A stretch of DNA of 7,548 bases from Bugula neritina (taxonomy: Eukaryota; Animalia; Bryozoa), in NCBI GenBank assembly GCA_964035545.1, contig CAXIUT010000214.1, positions 1 to 7,548 of the forward strand, given 5' to 3'. The notes below the pieces were generated by a model that saw only the letters and a list, made by a program, of their open reading frames with translations, had not been told where the DNA came from and made no database searches. The first letter of the stretch is position 1, and every line of letters starts with the position of its first letter. The position numbers were made by a program, and so were the translations under genes. Shown one piece after another: positions 1-7,461 of this stretch.

Positions 1-63
1 CCCAACCCCAACCCCAACCCCAACCCCAACCCCAACCCCAACCCCAACCCCAACCCCAACCCC
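1..63 (-). repeat. Left terminal telomere, (CCCCAA)n, Tetrahymena-type C4A2
   Basis: Perfect CCCCAA tandem repeat from base 1 to 63 (about 10.5 units). The G-rich strand runs 5'->3' toward the end, as expected for a chromosome terminus. Confidence 0.98.
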
Positions 64-588
64 TTTGATAAGTAATAATAAAAGAATAATTCAAAATATA
101 AAATGTTATAAAATTATTTATTTCAAATTATAAATCTATATTCAATCTTCATTGATATGATTTAGTATTAATAGATCATTATTTCGATAAAATTATTATT
201 TTTATATTAAGTTATATTATTTTTTTCTTGATAAAATAAAATTCAAAACCAAATAAAATTTATAAAAAAGTCAATTTTTCAGCTGTTTTTATATTTCCTA
301 ACATAAATATACAACTTTAAATAAAAAATAAAAAAATAATTAAAAAATGATTTTTGGCAACGAGAAAGGGTAACAGAGTACTATATCAACTTTTTTATGT
401 ATTTCTTTTTAGGAGCTTTTAGTAGAAGTTTTAGGCTTTACCAGTCCATTAAATATTTTGATCTATTTGTAGATTATAATATCATTGATATCAGTATTAA
501 TTATTAAATGACTTTTTTGATATAAATGACTTTAATTATCAAATAAACTTATATTTAAGTTTTTGACATTTATTCTCTAAAATATAAG

Positions 589-599
589 CCCCAACCCCA
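589..599 (-). repeat. Short internal telomere-like remnant CCCCAACCCCA
   Basis: Exact 11-nt match to the telomeric repeat in the same orientation as the left telomere, inside very C-poor DNA, about 70 bp past the stop of the Rh gene. Confidence 0.7.
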
Positions 600-670
600 T
601 AATATTAAATCTAATAATTTGAAAATCAATTAAGATAATCCTAGATATAATGATAATAATCTGGATGTAA

Positions 671-2139
671 TCAAAGATAAGCAAATTGATCTTTTGGTCC
701 TCCTTCTGCTTCATATGGTACAAATCCATCGTCATCAATAAATAATCCACCTGCTCTTGGAATACCTACTCTTTCATCACTATGATAGTTAATACTTGAA
801 CTGTTAAACCAATAGGTCCTATCATCGAAATGATCCTCTGATTTCTGATTGTTTACACAATTTGATATCAATCCTGCTATTAAACCCACTCCTAAACCGA
901 TACCTGCAGAAATCACTGCGATCAACATTTCATATCCAGGGTTAAAATCTGTTGTCTTAGAACTGAAAGTAAATCCGTCAGAGTCATTATCAATCAACTT
1001 TCTAAAACCTGCGGCCAAAGCTCCTCCGAAAAGTCCTTGAATACCAAAAAGACTCCATGAAATAGTAGAAACTATATTGTTTTATTGTCCATAATTTTTT
1101 TCAAAAATATTTTGAAAGATAGCCATGAATGCTCCTCCAACAAAACCACCAGCCACAGCATAACCTGGATTAGTTATCCAGAATGAAGCTGAACCAATAA
1201 TAATAGCTCCAGCTATAGGTGCATAGATAAGATCTCTAGCAATTAGATATCCATTTATCAAAAGTGAGATGACTAAAGCTCCCATTATGGATGCTCCCAT
1301 GCCCATTATCACTAATAATGGACCTGTAATAATGTTAAACTGATTGATTCCATGATAAGTATCTAGGTCTGCTGCTAAAATAGGCAATAAAAGGAATAGA
1401 ATAAGGGCGCCCATGATAGATCGAGCGATACTTGCGGGATCTGCTTCATATTTTTTATGTTTGATGGTTGAAGTATCATCACTTGCTGCTTCACTTAGTC
1501 TATAAATGAAGCCAAGAGCAAGTCCCATAAATCCTCCAAAAGTAAAAATGCCAAAGGATCCAAAACTATCAATAGCTAAATTGCTGATAACTTGTCTATT
1601 GATCTCATATCCGAATATTCCGAAGATGGTGATGATCAGACATTCGAGTGCTCCTGCTCTTCCTAATACGCATGAGAATGCAACGATTAAAGAGATCGCA
1701 CACTTGAAGCATGAAGTGATTGTATTGGATGAATTTTGTCCAGTGGGAATTTAGAAGTTAGAGAGGTAGAGGTTGAATTATTGGTCGTTGAAGGAGTTGG
1801 ATGATGGGGTATCTTGAATGCCTGCTTTGGTCCAAAAAGCATTGGCAAAGGGATAGAACTCTACACATAGAGCGGTTATAAGAAAAGCAAATCCAAGAGA
1901 GGTCCATAGAAGTCTTTTAAAGAACGAGAAGACAAGACCGAATCCTTCGTTATTAGATAATTACCTGCTATTGCTAGAAATCCAAGGAAGATAGCGAATG
2001 TGATTGAGGAGATATTGATGTATGAAGTGGTGTTGGGGATAGTGAAAGCATAAAGCAAGGGGACAGCTATATGTAGAATAATGAGAGTTATCGAGAAGAC
2101 GACATTATTCCTTGAAACTGATTGGTTGTCGAAAGCCAT
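671..2139 (-). CDS. Rh-type (Amt/Mep/Rh family) ammonium transporter homolog, about 482 aa; complement(join(671..1944,1965..2139))
   Basis: ATG at 2139-2137. After removing a 20-nt GT-AG intron, one frame runs to TGA at 673-671 with three in-frame TAA. Rh-like motifs: AIAGFGLVFSFFKRLLWTSLGFAFL (cf. GFGFLMTFLxRYGFSAVGFNFL), CFKCAISLIVAFSCVLGR, DSFGSFGIFTFGGFMGL, APIAGAIIIGS, NPGYAVAGGFVGG, WSLFGIQGLFGG, and C-terminal HFDDRTYW (cf. FEDxxYW). Many hydrophobic segments. Confidence 0.92.
1945..1964 (-). other. 20-nt spliceosomal intron (GTAATTATCTAATAACGAAG), phase 1
   Basis: GT...AG ends. Removal joins the N-terminal frame to the downstream frame and restores the Rh GFG motif (G|GA TTC GGT). 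Confidence 0.88.
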
Positions 2140-2509
2140 CACTTTACCTGAAATTAATATTTTGAATATATCTCAACAATAAATCATATTGAATAAAATA
2201 TGTTGGAAAGAAAGATAACGTTTTTTTTATTTAAAGTTTATTAGATCAGATAAAATGTTCAATAATTTGTTATTTTATTTTTGAAGGACGATTCTGACAA
2301 TCATGTTTATTTTTTAAGGGAGAAAGTTTAGCTAAATAAATCTTTTATCCTATTATTTATAACAAAAATATTACAAAAATATCCTTTACTGATGGAAAGT
2401 TCAATAAATCCTAGCATTATTTCATATTTTATTTGACTTCTTTTCTTTAACTTAAAATACTAATTTCTTCAAAAATTATCTTTTCACTTAATAAATTATA
2501 AATTTGTTT
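2140..2509. promoter_or_regulatory. Divergent intergenic region, probable bidirectional promoter for the Rh and sugar-transporter genes
   Basis: 370-bp AT-rich non-coding gap between two head-to-head start codons. No specific element identified. Confidence 0.5.
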
Positions 2510-4074
2510 ATGTAAGACATCGAAGGCGTTCATAAATCAGTCATCATCATTATCCCGGGAATAGCGAGTTTGGCCTCTATAGTAAACGGATACTTTCTCA
2601 TCTATTTTACTATGATCTTCGAACATGTCAAGTAGTATAACTCTTTCAATGATGAATAGTTTCTTCATTTCTATTTTCCTCTGATGGATGCAGCTCTACC
2701 ACTAGGTGCATTTATTGGTATACTTTTATTTATTTAGGTTCTTTCGTCTACAACCATTTTGTCAATTCTTTTGGATAAAAAAAAGCAATGCAGTATCTAG
2801 ACTATATTTCAATAGTAGCCATATTAATGCAACTATGTTCTTTAAATATAGTCCTTGTAAGCTTTTCAAGATTAATAATGGGTTTTTACTGTGCAATAAC
2901 GATGGCATTGATTCCTTCTTGGATTTTATCTATGTCTCCAAGTTTTCTAGGTGGAATATTAGGTACTTTTAGTCAATTAGCAATCGCAATAGGAATGTTT
3001 TAGGTCTACTGTATGGAATATTTTCTATAAGATACTTCTCTTAGCAAAGAATTAAGAGTTCGATTATTTATTTCCTTGCCTTTACTGAATATCATTGTCC
3101 ACCTCATAGGAATTCATAAAGTAGGTTTTGACAGTCTCAATCGAATCATAGCTCGAAAATAAAATCCTTAGATAGTAAGATTTATGAAGACTATGTATGG
3201 AAAAGATTGGAGAAAATTTGCCAAATAATTACGTACCTTTAAAAACGAACCAAGCATAGAGGTATCACATGAAAATCACTAAGATGAAATTCAAGTAGCA
3301 GTGAGATAGACTAATGAATAGAGCATTAATTTTACCTAAAGTAAAGAATCAAAGGATAATCCTAATTTAGTGATAATGAAAAAAATCGAAACAATGTTAT
3401 TGAGAAAGCTGATGTTTTTATAACAAAATAAAATAGGAATCATGCTCACATTTGCTAATCAATTTTCAGGATTTATGGTCATTATCTACTATCTTTTGGA
3501 AATATATAAAAAACCTGAAGATAGCAGTCATTCTATAAACAATGGAATTAGAATCAATTTTAGCATTTTGCTTTATCTAGGATCTTTTCAAATAGTTTTA
3601 ACCTTGATCAGTGGATTTCTTATCCATAAGTTCGGAAGAAGAAGAATCATGTTGTCTGGCTTAGTTATAATAGTAATTTCTTTATTATTTGTCATCATTA
3701 ATGTCGGTCATCACAATGCGGAGATAATATTTTTGTTTGGGTATATTTTAGGGTATTCTATATCAGTAGGTCCTCTTTTCATGATGTATGCTATTGAAAC
3801 AGGAGCTAATATTTAGCTAGTTTTGCAAATTAATTGGTTCTTGATGTTAATATTGAGTTTTATCACTCACAAGTATATTGAAAATGTTAGTTAATCGATG
3901 GTTCTTGGAATATTTTGTGTCAGCTCTATTATCTCTTTGATATTTTTTGGTCAAAAAATGATATAAACTAAAGATCAGGATTATTAGGAGAATATTTAAG
4001 GAAGAAAAATACAAAATTAAGGATTATAGGTTCTTTATAGTCAAATTAGAGAATAATAAGAATAAAATTCATGA
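2510..4074 (+). CDS. MFS sugar-porter family transporter (divergent), about 514 aa; join(2510..2717,2738..4074)
   Basis: ATG at 2510 (M*DIEG...). After removing a 20-nt intron the frame is open to TGA at 4072-4074. Motifs: PLGAFIGS, FG*KK, SRLIMG...IPSWILSMSP, GILGTFSQLAIAIG, ANQFSG (cf. QQFSG), KFGRRRIMLSG, GYSISVGPLFMMYAIE, INW, I*TKD (cf. PETKG). Two hydrophobic halves separated by a charged loop. Confidence 0.9.
2718..2737 (+). other. 20-nt spliceosomal intron (GTATACTTTTATTTATTTAG), phase 1
   Basis: GT...AG ends and T-rich. Removal restores GAFIG|SF and shifts from frame 2 into the frame carrying the rest of the transporter. Confidence 0.9.
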
Positions 4075-4186
4075 TAATTTTAAAATTATATCTATTCTAT
4101 CATCATATTTATCTTATTCAAGATATTTAAATATTATAATTGTTATCATTTATGCAAGTTGCCTCCAATTATAATAATTTATAAGA

Positions 4187-5032
4187 ATGTCAGATATTAA
4201 ATAAATAGAATCCTTAACTAAATCTCTCTCTGAAATCGTAAATAACTTGAATAACTACATCTCTCATAAAGAAACTTCTCCAATCGTCAAGAAGGAGTCA
4301 GTTTACAAAAAAACATCAGATATGACTTATATGAGTTTCTTAGTCAAAGTTCTTTCACAGAGACCACCAGTTTAAGTTGTGCTGAAAAAGCAAAGCTATT
4401 GTTTACAGGAAGATCTTGAACTACTTCTTGAACTTTCATCTTATGCTAGTATCAATAATAAATGTTTCTAAGAAATATCAAGTAAAAAGAAACTTAACAG
4501 AACTATCTAAAGTATGAAATCAAGATACTATGAATGTCTTTCAAAAGTTGGTGAAGCTTAAATGAAAAAAATAGTCACCTGGATTGAACAATAAGGGGTG
4601 TAAGGATTTATTAATTTTGAAGCTGGTTAGTTTAAAATCAGTTTAAATGATCCTAAAGCTGAGAAAAAGACATAGAAAAAAGAAGTGAAGAGAAATAGAA
4701 CCGATTCTTTGTAAAATTTATAAAAAAAATATGAAAAGAAGAAATAAGTACCTAAAAAAATAGTACCAACAAACTGCAAAGAACTTAATGATATACTGAA
4801 ACTGTATTCAAAGATGGTGAATATACCAATCAAAACTTTATTATAAAATCTTGATCAGGTTTCAGGTGATTTTGTTCAGTTAGACAATTATATCGAGACC
4901 AAAGATAAAAAGTTACTATGGAACTCCTAAGAAGATGAAATTTTAAGAAAAGGAGGAATTGAGGTTTAACTTTTAAGAAAATATCGAGGAGCAGGAGTAG
5001 AGGCTAGAAAGAAATACCTTGGAATTAAATGA
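4187..5032 (+). CDS. RAP1: Rap1/TERF2IP-like protein (Rap1-type Myb domain + Rap1 C-terminal RCT domain), 281 aa
   Basis: One frame from ATG 4187 to TGA 5030-5032 with many in-frame TAA/TAG, so the ORF track missed it. Myb-like segment at about 4397-4540: YCLQEDLELL...NNKCF*EI...RTI*SMKSRYYECL (cf. Rap1 FTxxDDxAIL...GNALWKAM...HSWQSLKDRYLKHL). Lys/Glu-rich linker follows. RCT-like end: LDQVSGDFVQLDNYI...LLWNS*EDEILRK...LLRKYRGAGVEARKKYL (cf. SG...IWSxxDDxxL...LxKKFGxxNVxRRxxF). Alignment is from memory, not a search. Confidence 0.75.
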
Positions 5033-5097
5033 TTATTCTATCGAACTTTTAAAGCTATATAGATAAGTATTCTATTCGAATTTCTATATAATTTAAA

Positions 5098-6552
5098 ATG
5101 ATAGAGGATATAAATAGCAAAAGTGAGCCAGAGGAGATATCTTTGTTGAATATAAACACTAATGACATTTTGATTGAGTAAAAGAAGGATAAAATAACCT
5201 ATTTTTTGCCTTGTTATGTGAGAATTAAGGTAAAAACTGTCAAGCAACTTGAAATAGAATCATTGTCTGGCATGATTTCAGGAACTCTTTTGTTCTCTTT
5301 TTATTATGGAAACCTTCCCAGAGACTTAATTGACCAGTTCACAGGTCCTGATGCCTCCAAATCGATATTATTGCAACTGGGCAGACAAGAATCTATTGAG
5401 CTTAAAGAAGAAAAAGGTATCACATTTAAATAAGATCCAGCCAATAAATTCATAGACTATGTAATTAGAACATAATTTGATTGCCATCTAACTGGAGATG
5501 TGGTATACACTCCATTTTAGATATTGAACCTGACTCTATCAGTCACAGTTCAATCGGTAATTTTAAATCCCAAAATAAACAATGGAAAGAAAATCATTGT
5601 TAAATTTAACTGCATGAATAGCAGTAATGTCACCACTATTGATTCCTTCGATTGCACTTTTGGAACTTATAATCTAGCTGATTATTTTCTAGATAGTGAC
5701 TATACCAATAAAGCTCTCGACAGATTTTCTCCTATTTCTGTCATGAATCCTGACTATAAGATTCTAGAAGACAAAGTCTTTGCTGTAAAAAATAAAAAGA
5801 AATTAGATCCTGAAGAATAAGATCCAAAACCAGCTTTAGAGCATGAAAATAGTAATGTTAAGCTCATTAGTCTTCAAGAATAGAAGAAATAAAACAAAAA
5901 TATATCTGTTAATCCTAGTATTGGTCCTAAAATAGACAAAGAAGAAAAAATAAAACACTATCAATATACCCATTTCAGAATACCTCTGTATAAGTATCCA
6001 GGAGCTTCTTTGATTTCCATATTCATCCCAGTATATGTCCTTGGAATCCTAAATCTGGCAATATTCTTTCAAGATACAGTTGTGGGAGATAGAGTGGCCA
6101 ATATTGCAACAATCACTTTGGCCTTTATTGCCTTCTTGCCCACAATTAACGAAAAAATTCCTTAAACAAGTGATATCAAAATGATAGAGATCTTAATTTA
6201 CATCCAGACTGCTGCAACTATGTTGACTTTAGCACACACCTTATATATAAGAAACTAAAATGGAGATACTTATAGCTTTGAATGGTAGTCAAGCGTATTA
6301 TTCTTCATTACTTTGGCAGTTAATGCGATTACTTTTGGCATAGTTGTCGGCATGTTTGTGATACACAAGATATGGTGGTAGAAAATTTACAATCAGAAAA
6401 GAGAAGTCAAGATTAGAAACAAGTTGGTAAGAGAAGATTGGGAAAACAAGGAGTGTGACTAGTATTTTAAAAAGTGGATCATGAACAATAGAGTTTCTGT
6501 TTTAGGAGTTCAAACTGATAAAATCAAACTAGAACAACCAAAGAAAGCATGA
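5098..6552 (+). CDS. Cys-less (Pro-loop) pentameric ligand-gated ion channel subunit, 484 aa
   Basis: One frame from ATG 5098 to TGA 6550-6552 with 12 in-frame TAA/TAG. Beta1/beta2-like CYVRIKVKTVKQLEIESLSGMISGTLLFSF; Pro-loop YTPF*ILNLTL (cf. F/YPFDxQ); pre-M1/M1 FRIPLYKYPGASLISIFIPVYVLGILNLAIFF; M2 GDRVANIATITLAFIAFLPTI; M2-M3 loop IP*TSDIKMIE; M3; M4 at about 6295-6363. Confidence 0.82.
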
Positions 6553-6623
6553 TAAAACTCTATTATATTTTTAAATGATTGCATAAATAAGATGAGTAAT
6601 AATTAAGTTGATAATAATAACTA

Positions 6624-6830
6624 ATGGATATTGGAGAGAGGCTTAATTTCAATGGAAAAATCATACAATACTGTTTGAACTTGAACAACTGGAAAGCCAA
6701 CGAAAATCAAGAGGAAGCTTTGGATCGTTTCCAAGATTGTATGACAAGATCAATTGTTGCTGAACAACTTTTTAGAGCATAACTCAACAGAACTAGACCT
6801 GGAATATTTAAAGAAGAAGAAGAAGAATGA
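6624..6830 (+). CDS. Small hypothetical protein, 68 aa (true start may be 6592, see findings)
   Basis: ATG 6624 to TGA 6828-6830: MDIGERLNFNGKIIQYCLNLNNWKANENQEEALDRFQDCMTRSIVAEQLFRA*LNRTRPGIFKEEEEE. GC is higher than in the flanks, and the TGA-TAA stop context matches neighbouring genes. Confidence 0.65.
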
Positions 6831-7027
6831 TAAAAGCATGATCCATTAAATAAATAAATATCTGACACTTTTGGATAATATCATTTGTTACTATTCATTA
6901 CAAATATATCAATAAAAGCAATTTTAAATACCAAAATACAAAAAACATCTTTTTCAAGTGTAAATTTATTTTTGATTTAAATTTATCTTTAAAATATAAG
7001 GTTATGAATTTAATTCATCTATTTTAA

Positions 7028-7111
7028 GGGGTTGGGGTTGGGGTTGGGGTTGGGGTTGGGGTTGGGGTTGGGGTTGGGGTTGGGGTTGGGGTTGGGGTTG
7101 GGGTTGGGGTT
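7028..7111 (+). repeat. Internal telomeric tract, (GGGGTT)14
   Basis: 84 bp of perfect GGGGTT repeat in the same orientation as the right terminal telomere, followed by 350 bp of unique sequence. Confidence 0.97.
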
Positions 7112-7461
7112 TTAATTCAATTTAGAGGGCAAGATAAATCAAAATATATTTTTTTTAATTTTCTTATCTTTTTTGGAAAGAAGAAGAATCTTTAGTAATA
7201 GAGTTATTCTCAAACTGAAATAAAATTCTAATTTATTTTATATTGAGAAATAAAATAATTTTTTCCAAAAAACGTCTTTAAAAGATGAAAAAATAAGTAA
7301 AAATAGTTTTATTATCTACTTTTTTAGTACATAATTTGAATAAAAGTGAATAAAGGAGAGTAATATCATTTCCAAAAGACTTAAAAAGCGACGAATTAAA
7401 TGATAATTTAATAATTGTCCTATTCTAAATATATATGATAACGCTCAAATTTCTTCTTTTA

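Follow-up and report, generated by a model that had tools for sequence, protein, structure and literature searches.

A divergent Cys-loop-less pentameric ligand-gated ion channel subunit from a ciliate mini-chromosome, with a possibly inverted membrane orientation

The pLGICs (pentameric ligand-gated ion channels) are the textbook receptors for external transmitters, and in all members with known structure or function of which we are aware the beta-sandwich domain is extracellular or periplasmic. Members without the disulfide of the Cys-loop have been listed from protists as 'Pro-loop receptors' in a survey that leaves signal peptides and topology aside (Jaiteh et al. 2016, PMC4795631). Such protist Cys-less members are thus known, but none is known to have been characterised, and their membrane orientation is unquestioned in the literature examined. 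The protein described here is a Cys-less Pro-loop receptor in the sense of that survey (PMC4795631). It resembles ELIC and GLIC in the missing Cys-loop disulfide, the Pro-loop proline and a very short M3-M4 linker; ELIC is the best match of its family by sequence profile (2e-10), and GLIC is among the fold matches. However, ELIC and GLIC have signal peptides, keep the ligand-binding domain in the periplasm and end soon after M4, whereas the present family has no signal peptide, continues after M4 into a basic tail (50-250 aa) that contains a conserved Trp motif, has a long insertion of charged residues in loop C, and is invisible to Pfam. With the metazoan Cys-loop receptors (nAChR, 5-HT3, GABA-A, GlyR) it shares the overall fold, an N-terminal helix before beta1 and, in M2, an acid at -1', Arg at 0', Thr at 6', Leu at 9' and an acid at 20', followed by IP.TS. 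By contrast, the second Cys of the Cys-loop, the signal peptide and the long basic M3-M4 cytoplasmic domain of metazoan receptors are all absent from it, and a long tail after M4 replaces the long M3-M4 domain of metazoan and host receptors.

The DNA analysed (in the following, the window) is a complete contig of 7,548 nucleotides, deposited with the assembly of the bryozoan Bugula neritina. C4A2 repeats stand at its start and G4T2 repeats at its end, its composition is AT-rich, and TGA alone interrupts its reading frames. Because of these telomeric repeats, the base composition and the TGA-only frame breaks, we identify it as a small macronuclear ciliate chromosome that was sequenced together with the animal, i.e. 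a telomere-capped mini-chromosome that is a contaminant within the animal assembly. The assembly itself measures 216 Mb, and its Mb-scale contigs bear canonical animal pLGIC genes that are split by introns. Near-identical DNA was found in sequencing runs filed under three organism labels in three studies; a search for the locus in RNA runs gave none. The ORFs on the window terminate in TGA; one of them (674-2245, minus strand) was first guessed to encode an Rh/Amt transporter, which Pfam did not support.

The sequence-only reading had not recognised the genetic code and had left in-frame stops untranslated. Here TAA and TAG stand for Glu and translation stops at TGA alone, as in the peritrich nuclear code (NCBI table 30). 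This assignment was examined in an alignment of the channel ORF with nine close relatives, which contains 212 TAA/TAG sites: the residues opposite these sites weigh 50.5 for E and 12.7 for Q. Columns of conserved Q hold 29 Q and no TAA/TAG, while columns of conserved E hold 17 E and 10 TAA/TAG. Similarly, where other ciliate contigs of the assembly carry HSP70 genes, TAA/TAG stands opposite a host Glu 24 times and opposite a Gln six times, and natural TAA/GAA polymorphisms occur at 4469 and 6256. Family alignment, HSP70 and the TAA/GAA polymorphisms together show that these codons stand for Glu, not Gln, and all residues of the channel are given here in the Glu reading.

The channel ORF runs from ATG 5098 to TGA 6550-6552 on the plus strand and encodes 484 aa, with 12 in-frame TAA/TAG codons. 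Contigs from three further public runs differ from the window at 16 positions within 5098-6552 (codons 33-444), of which 15 are synonymous if TAA/TAG is Glu and 14 if it is Gln; the sole nonsynonymous change in the Glu reading is K103R. The gene is thus real and under strong purifying selection. Synonymous third-position changes fall at codons 263, 280 and 286, all inside a charged insertion, and no spliced joints or skipped segments were seen across the ORF in the DNA-like contigs of four runs; since the changes in the insertion are synonymous and no run skips a segment, the frame is continuous and intron-free in the covered parts. The features of the gene and of the gap before it are as follows.

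5033..5097, plus strand: AT-rich intergenic gap of 65 bp, from the upstream TGA to the channel ATG
5098..6552, plus strand: CDS of a divergent Cys-less pLGIC subunit, 484 aa, read with TAA/TAG as Glu and stop TGA
5098..5199, plus strand: short polar N-terminal segment, aa 1-34, without hydrophobic core (alignment, hydropathy)
aa 20-25, plus strand: conserved motif (S/N)TN(D/E/Q)(I/V)L, probably an N-terminal helix ahead of beta1
5200..5985, plus strand: N-terminal beta-sandwich ('ligand-binding') domain, aa 35-296 (profile A1; fold from relative P0136)
5473..5532, plus strand: Pro-loop, the Cys-loop equivalent, aa 126-145, with C129 kept, core Y137-T-P139-F-E141 and Leu at the second-Cys position
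5713..5952, plus strand: variable K/E/N-rich insertion that separates the last two strands (loop C region, about aa 206-285); coding, no intron
6004..6069, plus strand: M1, aa 303-324, with conserved Pro311 and preceded by the pre-M1 Arg294
6091..6144, plus strand: M2 pore helix, aa 332-349 (hhalign to host nAChR-type genes; phmmer matches to bona fide pLGICs)
6181..6249, plus strand: M3, aa 362-384 (hydrophobic segment, alignment)
6250..6291, plus strand: M3-M4 linker, very short and acidic, aa 385-398, charges +1/-4 (charge count)
6292..6363, plus strand: M4, aa 399-422 (hydrophobic segment)
6364..6549, plus strand: post-M4 tail of 62 aa, basic beside the membrane, with 8 K+R in its first 25 aa
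6439-6468, plus strand: tail motif W448-x-N-x-x-C-D-x-x-F457, conserved in close relatives

Searches with the window protein were run on its stop-free pieces, while folding and whole-chain work used relatives with the standard code. The Pfam models Neur_chan_LBD (PF02931) and Neur_chan_memb (PF02932) find nothing on the window, whether six-frame translations of the assembly are scanned or stop-free pieces at E 10, and only one of 47 family sequences reaches E 5e-4 with PF02932. The piece 5893-6162 (90 aa, from pre-M1 to the M2-M3 loop) nevertheless obtained 196 phmmer matches among 1.8 billion representative proteins, including P0044 (9e-12), P0099 (2e-7) and P0129 (7e-6), in all three of which Pfam recognises the two pLGIC domains. 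Profile A1, built from eight relatives in protists, matches ELIC at 2.3e-10 and then GlyR, alpha7 nAChR and GABA-A beta, with alignments that extend from the Pro-loop to M3; on the window it reaches E 2e-36 (5599-6387) and E 1e-6 (5215-5769), and it also matches host receptor exons, weakly. The M2 stretch aligns without gaps to host nAChR-type genes, a result that is weak alone (hhalign probability only 26%, E 7e-4). We therefore place the protein firmly in the pLGIC superfamily; the phmmer matches, profile A1 and the fold of a relative bear out this much of its earlier description as a pentameric channel, although the Pfam pLGIC models miss it.

The fold was modelled on the full-length relative P0136 (AF2; pLDDT 82.4, pTM 0.77). 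The model has strands at 32-245, followed by helices at 247-270, 275-298, 308-333 and 337-382, and residues 1-24 are disordered except for a short helix (22-27) before beta1. Foldseek aligns it to whole chains of GlyR alpha2, GABA-A, muscle nAChR, GluCl and GLIC (E ~1e-16, TM 0.6-0.7, ~345 columns), and ESM-Atlas features lead to unnamed eukaryotic clusters and to Neur_chan clusters. Judged from this model, the window protein probably shares the superfamily fold of an N-terminal beta-sandwich and four transmembrane helices. Pentameric assembly, by homology only, and channel activity are what we infer from this kinship.

The residues expected of a pLGIC are in place. The Pro-loop column Y137-T-P139-F-E141 aligns with the PFD of relatives and of ELIC; in the Glu reading its core is YTPFE, with E141 encoded by TAG/TAA. 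M2 has D331 at -1', R332 at 0', T338 at 6' and L341 at 9', and the M2-M3 loop has E352 at 20' followed by an IPETS motif (P355). R294, P311, T338, L341 and P355 are hallmark residues that are conserved across distant subfamilies, while the -1' residue differs among relatives. A protein derived from pLGICs that is no longer a ligand-gated pore, for instance a membrane protein with a structural or regulatory role or a copy in decay, could account for the failure of the Pfam models, for the replacement of the loop C region by a variable charged insertion of ~70 aa, whose length and sequence differ between close relatives, and for the variable -1' position. We judge this highly improbable: purifying selection is strong, and the Pro-loop, the pre-M1 Arg, the Pro of M1, the 6' Thr and 9' Leu of M2 and the motif between M2 and M3 have been kept across distant subfamilies.

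The N-terminus of the window protein is acidic and polar, with a maximum Kyte-Doolittle mean of 0.51 (9 aa, first 35 residues), and the alternative in-frame ATG at 5029 brings no hydrophobic core. This agrees with the sequence-only reading, which had described an acidic N-terminus without hydrophobic signal, and the observation extends to the whole family: a hydrophobic N-terminal segment is absent from the window and from ten other complete N-termini, belonging to at least four subfamilies. A metagenome scan with a piece of the window yielded seven close relatives, which share 58-73% identity over that piece; six of them have a complete 5' end. The window protein and these six start with Met and 17-20 polar residues, followed by a motif STN(E/Q)(V/I)L and then by beta1 (YYLPCY...). 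Two of these sequences, L027b and L024, have an in-frame TGA 6 and 11 codons upstream of the ATG, and in L027 two copies of the channel lie in tandem, ~130 bp apart. More distant relatives, which use the standard code, behave likewise. P0146, on a genomic contig of 9.9 kb, has two in-frame stops 4-5 codons ahead of its ATG; P0136, from a metatranscriptome contig that includes a 5' UTR, has the same architecture; and P0119 starts as these two do. P0151 (629 aa, from a genome with 58% GC) has an extra charged N-terminal portion of 140 aa, which gave no match in Pfam, with a non-hydrophobic start and an in-frame stop upstream.

These starts bear on the possibility that the gene model is truncated and that splicing joins it to an upstream exon for a signal peptide. 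Very short introns occur in ciliates, and one paralogue has no ATG at the expected place. The room for such an exon is nevertheless small, as had been remarked earlier: the upstream ORF 4187-5032 ends with TGA 5030-5032, only the 65 bp of 5033-5097 separate it from the channel ATG, and it is a real CDS under selection (nine of 11 polymorphisms synonymous in its own frame). Synteny of this upstream gene, sought in relatives for a comparison of intergenic lengths, was not found. Furthermore, seven close genes start at the homologous position ahead of the conserved motif, in-frame stops stand 4 to 63 codons upstream in P0146, L027b, L024 and P0151, the tandem copies of L027 leave ~130 bp between them, and the P0136 transcript contig begins with a 5' UTR and shows the same architecture. 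A missing signal exon is very unlikely because the polar starts occupy a homologous position and relatives have in-frame stops upstream, and we consider truncation of the model extremely improbable. The lack of a signal peptide, as read from these N-termini, is a family trait.

The paralogue in question, C59A (G000:C59, L018:3332-5584), has no ATG at the usual place; the ATG at L018:3843 misses the frame by one base. The single ATG in frame stands 98 codons upstream, and a start there would bring in a hydrophobic stretch, possibly a signal anchor. An open upstream frame means little in a code with one stop, and C59A could stem from an error in the assembly, be a copy in decay or represent a genuine variant.

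The charges around the hydrophobic segments (aa 303-324, 332-349, 362-384 and 399-422) give an indication of membrane orientation. In ten close sequences the 15 aa before M1 contain 1-3 K+R and hardly any acidic residue, the M1-M2 loop contains 1-2 acids with the 0' Arg as its only basic residue, and the M3-M4 linker has 12-15 residues and is acidic. Stated as charges, M1 has +2 to +3 ahead of it and -1 to -2 behind it. The two loops had been called net acidic before, and they lie where they had been placed; in the Glu reading the M3-M4 loop becomes RNENGDTYSFEWES, with charges +1/-4, and is more acidic still. The tail, claimed to be about 60 aa long and basic next to the membrane, proves to have 62 aa with 16 K+R (net charge about +6 in the Glu reading). 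Its first 25 aa after M4 contain 8 K+R, and those of the close sequences 4-9, except in the divergent paralogue C59B. A long basic tail after M4 is present in all 17 relatives compared (50-250 residues across the family), and in both C59 paralogues the tail is long and K- and E-rich. In 17 of 17 members from several subfamilies, K+R are more numerous on the side of the N-domain, the M2-M3 loop and the tail than on the opposite side (161 versus 47 in total), an excess that comes mostly from the tail and is modest per residue (~18% versus 13%). The canonical receptors of the host served as a control: the 25 aa that immediately follow M3 in them are very basic, with 5 K+R.

A Trp is found ~25-35 residues past M4 in all subfamilies, within WxNxxCDxxF in the close ones. 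In the relative P0131 the tail contains DVDGNGLLSADDI, which fits the pattern of a 12-residue, Ca2+-binding EF-hand loop (D-x-D-x-N-G-x-L-x-x-x-D), although its Pfam EF-hand_6 match stays below the threshold (E 0.018, 15 bits versus a cut-off of 25). This loop, DVDGNGLLSADD, lies ~90 aa after M4, and 9 aa beyond it the P0131 ORF stops at what may be a splice donor.

Work on signal-anchor proteins indicates that a large, foldable N-terminal domain without a signal leads to an N-cytosolic anchor, while the positive-inside rule has exceptions and some eukaryotic proteins, e.g. neuregulin-1, translocate long N-terminal domains without a cleaved signal. M1 would fit as an N-cytosolic anchor because of the charges of its flanks, of the linker and of the tail, together with the K+R asymmetry in 17 of 17 members. 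An orientation with both N-terminus and C-terminus inside, i.e. inverted, is the best-supported if unproven reading of these sequences, and we regard it as slightly more probable than not. Further hints in this direction are the conserved Trp of the tail, the long K- and E-rich tails of the C59 paralogues, the EF-hand-type loop of P0131 and the lack of a conserved Cys pair in the N-domain. The charge pattern from which inversion had been suggested by the positive-inside rule has gained strength through the M1 flanks, the asymmetry across the family and the EF-hand-type loop, the last of which remains below the cut-off. We found no precedent for an inverted pLGIC, proposed or tested, in a literature search of incomplete coverage.

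Alternatively, the same divergent pLGIC could have the canonical orientation, with the N-domain translocated without a cleavable signal, either because M1 acts as a reverse, N-exo anchor or by a route specific to ciliates; in that case the basic tail would be at the outer or lumenal face, where it would serve the ligand-binding domain as a 'latch'. It is established knowledge that characterised members of the family all have an external ligand-binding domain. Whatever the orientation, the Trp motif of the tail shares a side of the membrane with the N-domain, on which it could pack; the charge bias per residue is modest, and the possible hydrophobic N-terminal extension of C59A counts against an inverted reading. 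On the other hand, a domain of ~300 aa with a predicted beta-sandwich fold is not likely to pass the translocon once it has been made, the charges flanking M1 favour N-in, the tail holds 16 K+R in 62 aa, and the tail of one relative has the EF-hand-type loop (below the Pfam cut-off).

The cysteines bear on the same alternative. The Cys-loop disulfide is absent: C129 lies at or near the position of the first Cys, and aa 145, at the second, is Leu. The label 'Cys-less' given to the protein earlier is thus apt for the disulfide, but the first Cys is kept. C129 stands 10 residues ahead of P139, as compared with 8 in the canonical loop, the metazoan C-x13-C around the Pro-loop is absent, and no close relative has a conserved Cys at the second position. 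A pair with such spacing, C172-x13-C186, exists downstream in a different loop, and the retention of both cysteines in most close relatives would suit an external N-domain. Its members are, however, lost singly in three relatives (L027b, L022 and L027a), and we reject a structural or obligatory disulfide between them on these grounds. A disulfide C39-C129 was likewise rejected, since L023 is without C39 yet keeps C129; in the P0136 model the equivalent of C39 is at the start of beta1 and that of C129 at the end of beta6, apparently far apart (by eye). No conserved Cys pair was found in the N-domain in the alignment of close relatives. Taken with the evidence above, the canonical orientation has in our view an appreciable but clearly lower probability than even.

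Returning to the inverted orientation, we propose that the product of the ORF is a functional pLGIC subunit, very divergent and Cys-loop-less, from a ciliate with TAA/TAG as Glu. The family has kept the gating hardware, namely the Pro-Phe-acid of the Pro-loop, the pre-M1 Arg, the M1 Pro, the 0' Arg, 6' Thr and 9' Leu of M2 and the 'IP.TS' between M2 and M3. It departs from the canon in the missing signal peptide, the acidic M3-M4 linker of 12-15 residues and the conserved basic tail of 50-250 residues. An N-terminal domain of ~300 residues would be synthesised before the first hydrophobic segment leaves the ribosome, and M1 should insert as a type II anchor because this segment comes late and its N flank is the more positive. 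With this insertion the beta-sandwich domain would be cytosolic, as would the M2-M3 loop and the tail; the two remaining loops, M1-M2 and M3-M4, would be exposed outside or to a lumen, and the channel would be gated from the cytosolic side by a putative ligand. We hold this explanation as a whole, a divergent pLGIC subunit that is inverted and cytosolically gated, to be somewhat favoured, its orientation and gating side being deduced from sequence features. Whether it represents a protist pLGIC clade that is upside-down relative to all known members, gated by intracellular ligands, possibly Ca2+-sensitive and located in the plasma or an organelle membrane, seems to us evenly balanced.

Opposite orientations within a channel family are not without parallel. 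The pore of ionotropic glutamate receptors (iGluR) is inverted with respect to that of K+ channels, an inversion established by structures. If the present prediction, made from sequence rules only, holds, a conserved channel module would likewise have been flipped. The same fold would then be gated from the cytosol, which would extend the scope of the superfamily to organellar or second-messenger-gated channels and would bear on the origin of the receptor family in early eukaryotes. If the orientation is canonical, the family would present an unusual translocation of a large domain without a signal peptide.

Whichever the orientation, censuses of protist pLGICs undercount, since the family is invisible to Pfam and unannotated. 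The subfamily occurs across protists and is annotated neither by Pfam nor by the source collections of the proteins searched. Indeed, a word-indexed protein search with P0136, and another with alignment A1, returned the queries themselves only, and the same search with alignment A3 returned 26 unnamed or 'hypothetical' proteins, all without Pfam domains.

The ciliate from which the chromosome derives uses the peritrich code, in which TAA and TAG are both read as glutamate and TGA is the sole stop. The glutamate reading is demonstrated by the genes of the channel family and of HSP70 (window 1-7548; contigs C87, C291, C58 and C31 of the Bugula neritina assembly) and by TAA/GAA polymorphisms at window positions 4469 and 6256. 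Besides the channel gene itself, the features considered here are the following:

Window 1-63, left end: C4A2 repeats
Window 674-2245, minus strand: long ORF for a multi-pass membrane protein
Window 2656-4071, plus strand: sugar-transporter (MFS) gene, with Pfam Sugar_tr matches (1e-13 and 1e-7) in two stop-free pieces
Window 6439-6468: conserved motif W-x-N-x-x-C-D-x-x-F in the channel tail, also present in relatives
Window about 7460-7548, right end: terminal G4T2 repeats
L018 (assembly contig C59, 39000-48999) 5680-5760: internal G4T2 array

A Pfam search with the two largest pieces of the minus-strand ORF gave no match; an initial assignment to the Rh/Amt transporters found no support there. 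An additional inner G4T2 array was observed at window positions of about 7040-7125, about 350 bp ahead of the terminal one.

The internal array of L018 lies within a 57-kb contig, between the tandem channel paralogues C59A and C59B, and immediately adjoins the 5' end of C59B, which has lost its start codon and retains the YTNRIL motif. The arrangement is explained either by concatenation of small chromosomes or by truncation of one copy at a breakage site. In C59A (L018 3584-3900) the conserved start position has no ATG; the ATG at 3843 is out of frame by one base, and the sole in-frame ATG, at 3584, would add about 98 aa including a hydrophobic stretch.

The tail motif is situated about 25 aa past M4, the last transmembrane segment, and its Trp is retained in every subfamily examined. 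The post-M4 tail of a distant family member, P0131 (locus L059), contains a putative EF-hand-type Ca2+-binding loop, DVDGNGLLSADD, within the last 30 codons of the ORF. This ORF ends 9 aa past the loop at GTAAAT, which could be a splice donor; an upstream exon bearing the Pro-loop stands in a different frame, and the source organism of P0131 therefore has introns. At the opposite terminus, one subfamily, represented by P0151 (L061; source genome with 58% GC and the standard code), possesses an extra charged region of about 140 aa ahead of the beta-sandwich, for which (residues 1-140) a Pfam search returned no match.

The same chromosome (window 3900-7000) was found in four public sequencing runs, X1-X4, with a divergence of 0.2-0.7%. 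Since these runs stem from three studies and bear three different organism labels, the ciliate accompanies several hosts or cultures. That the contigs of X4 break off at GATC sites points to a library of the Hi-C type.
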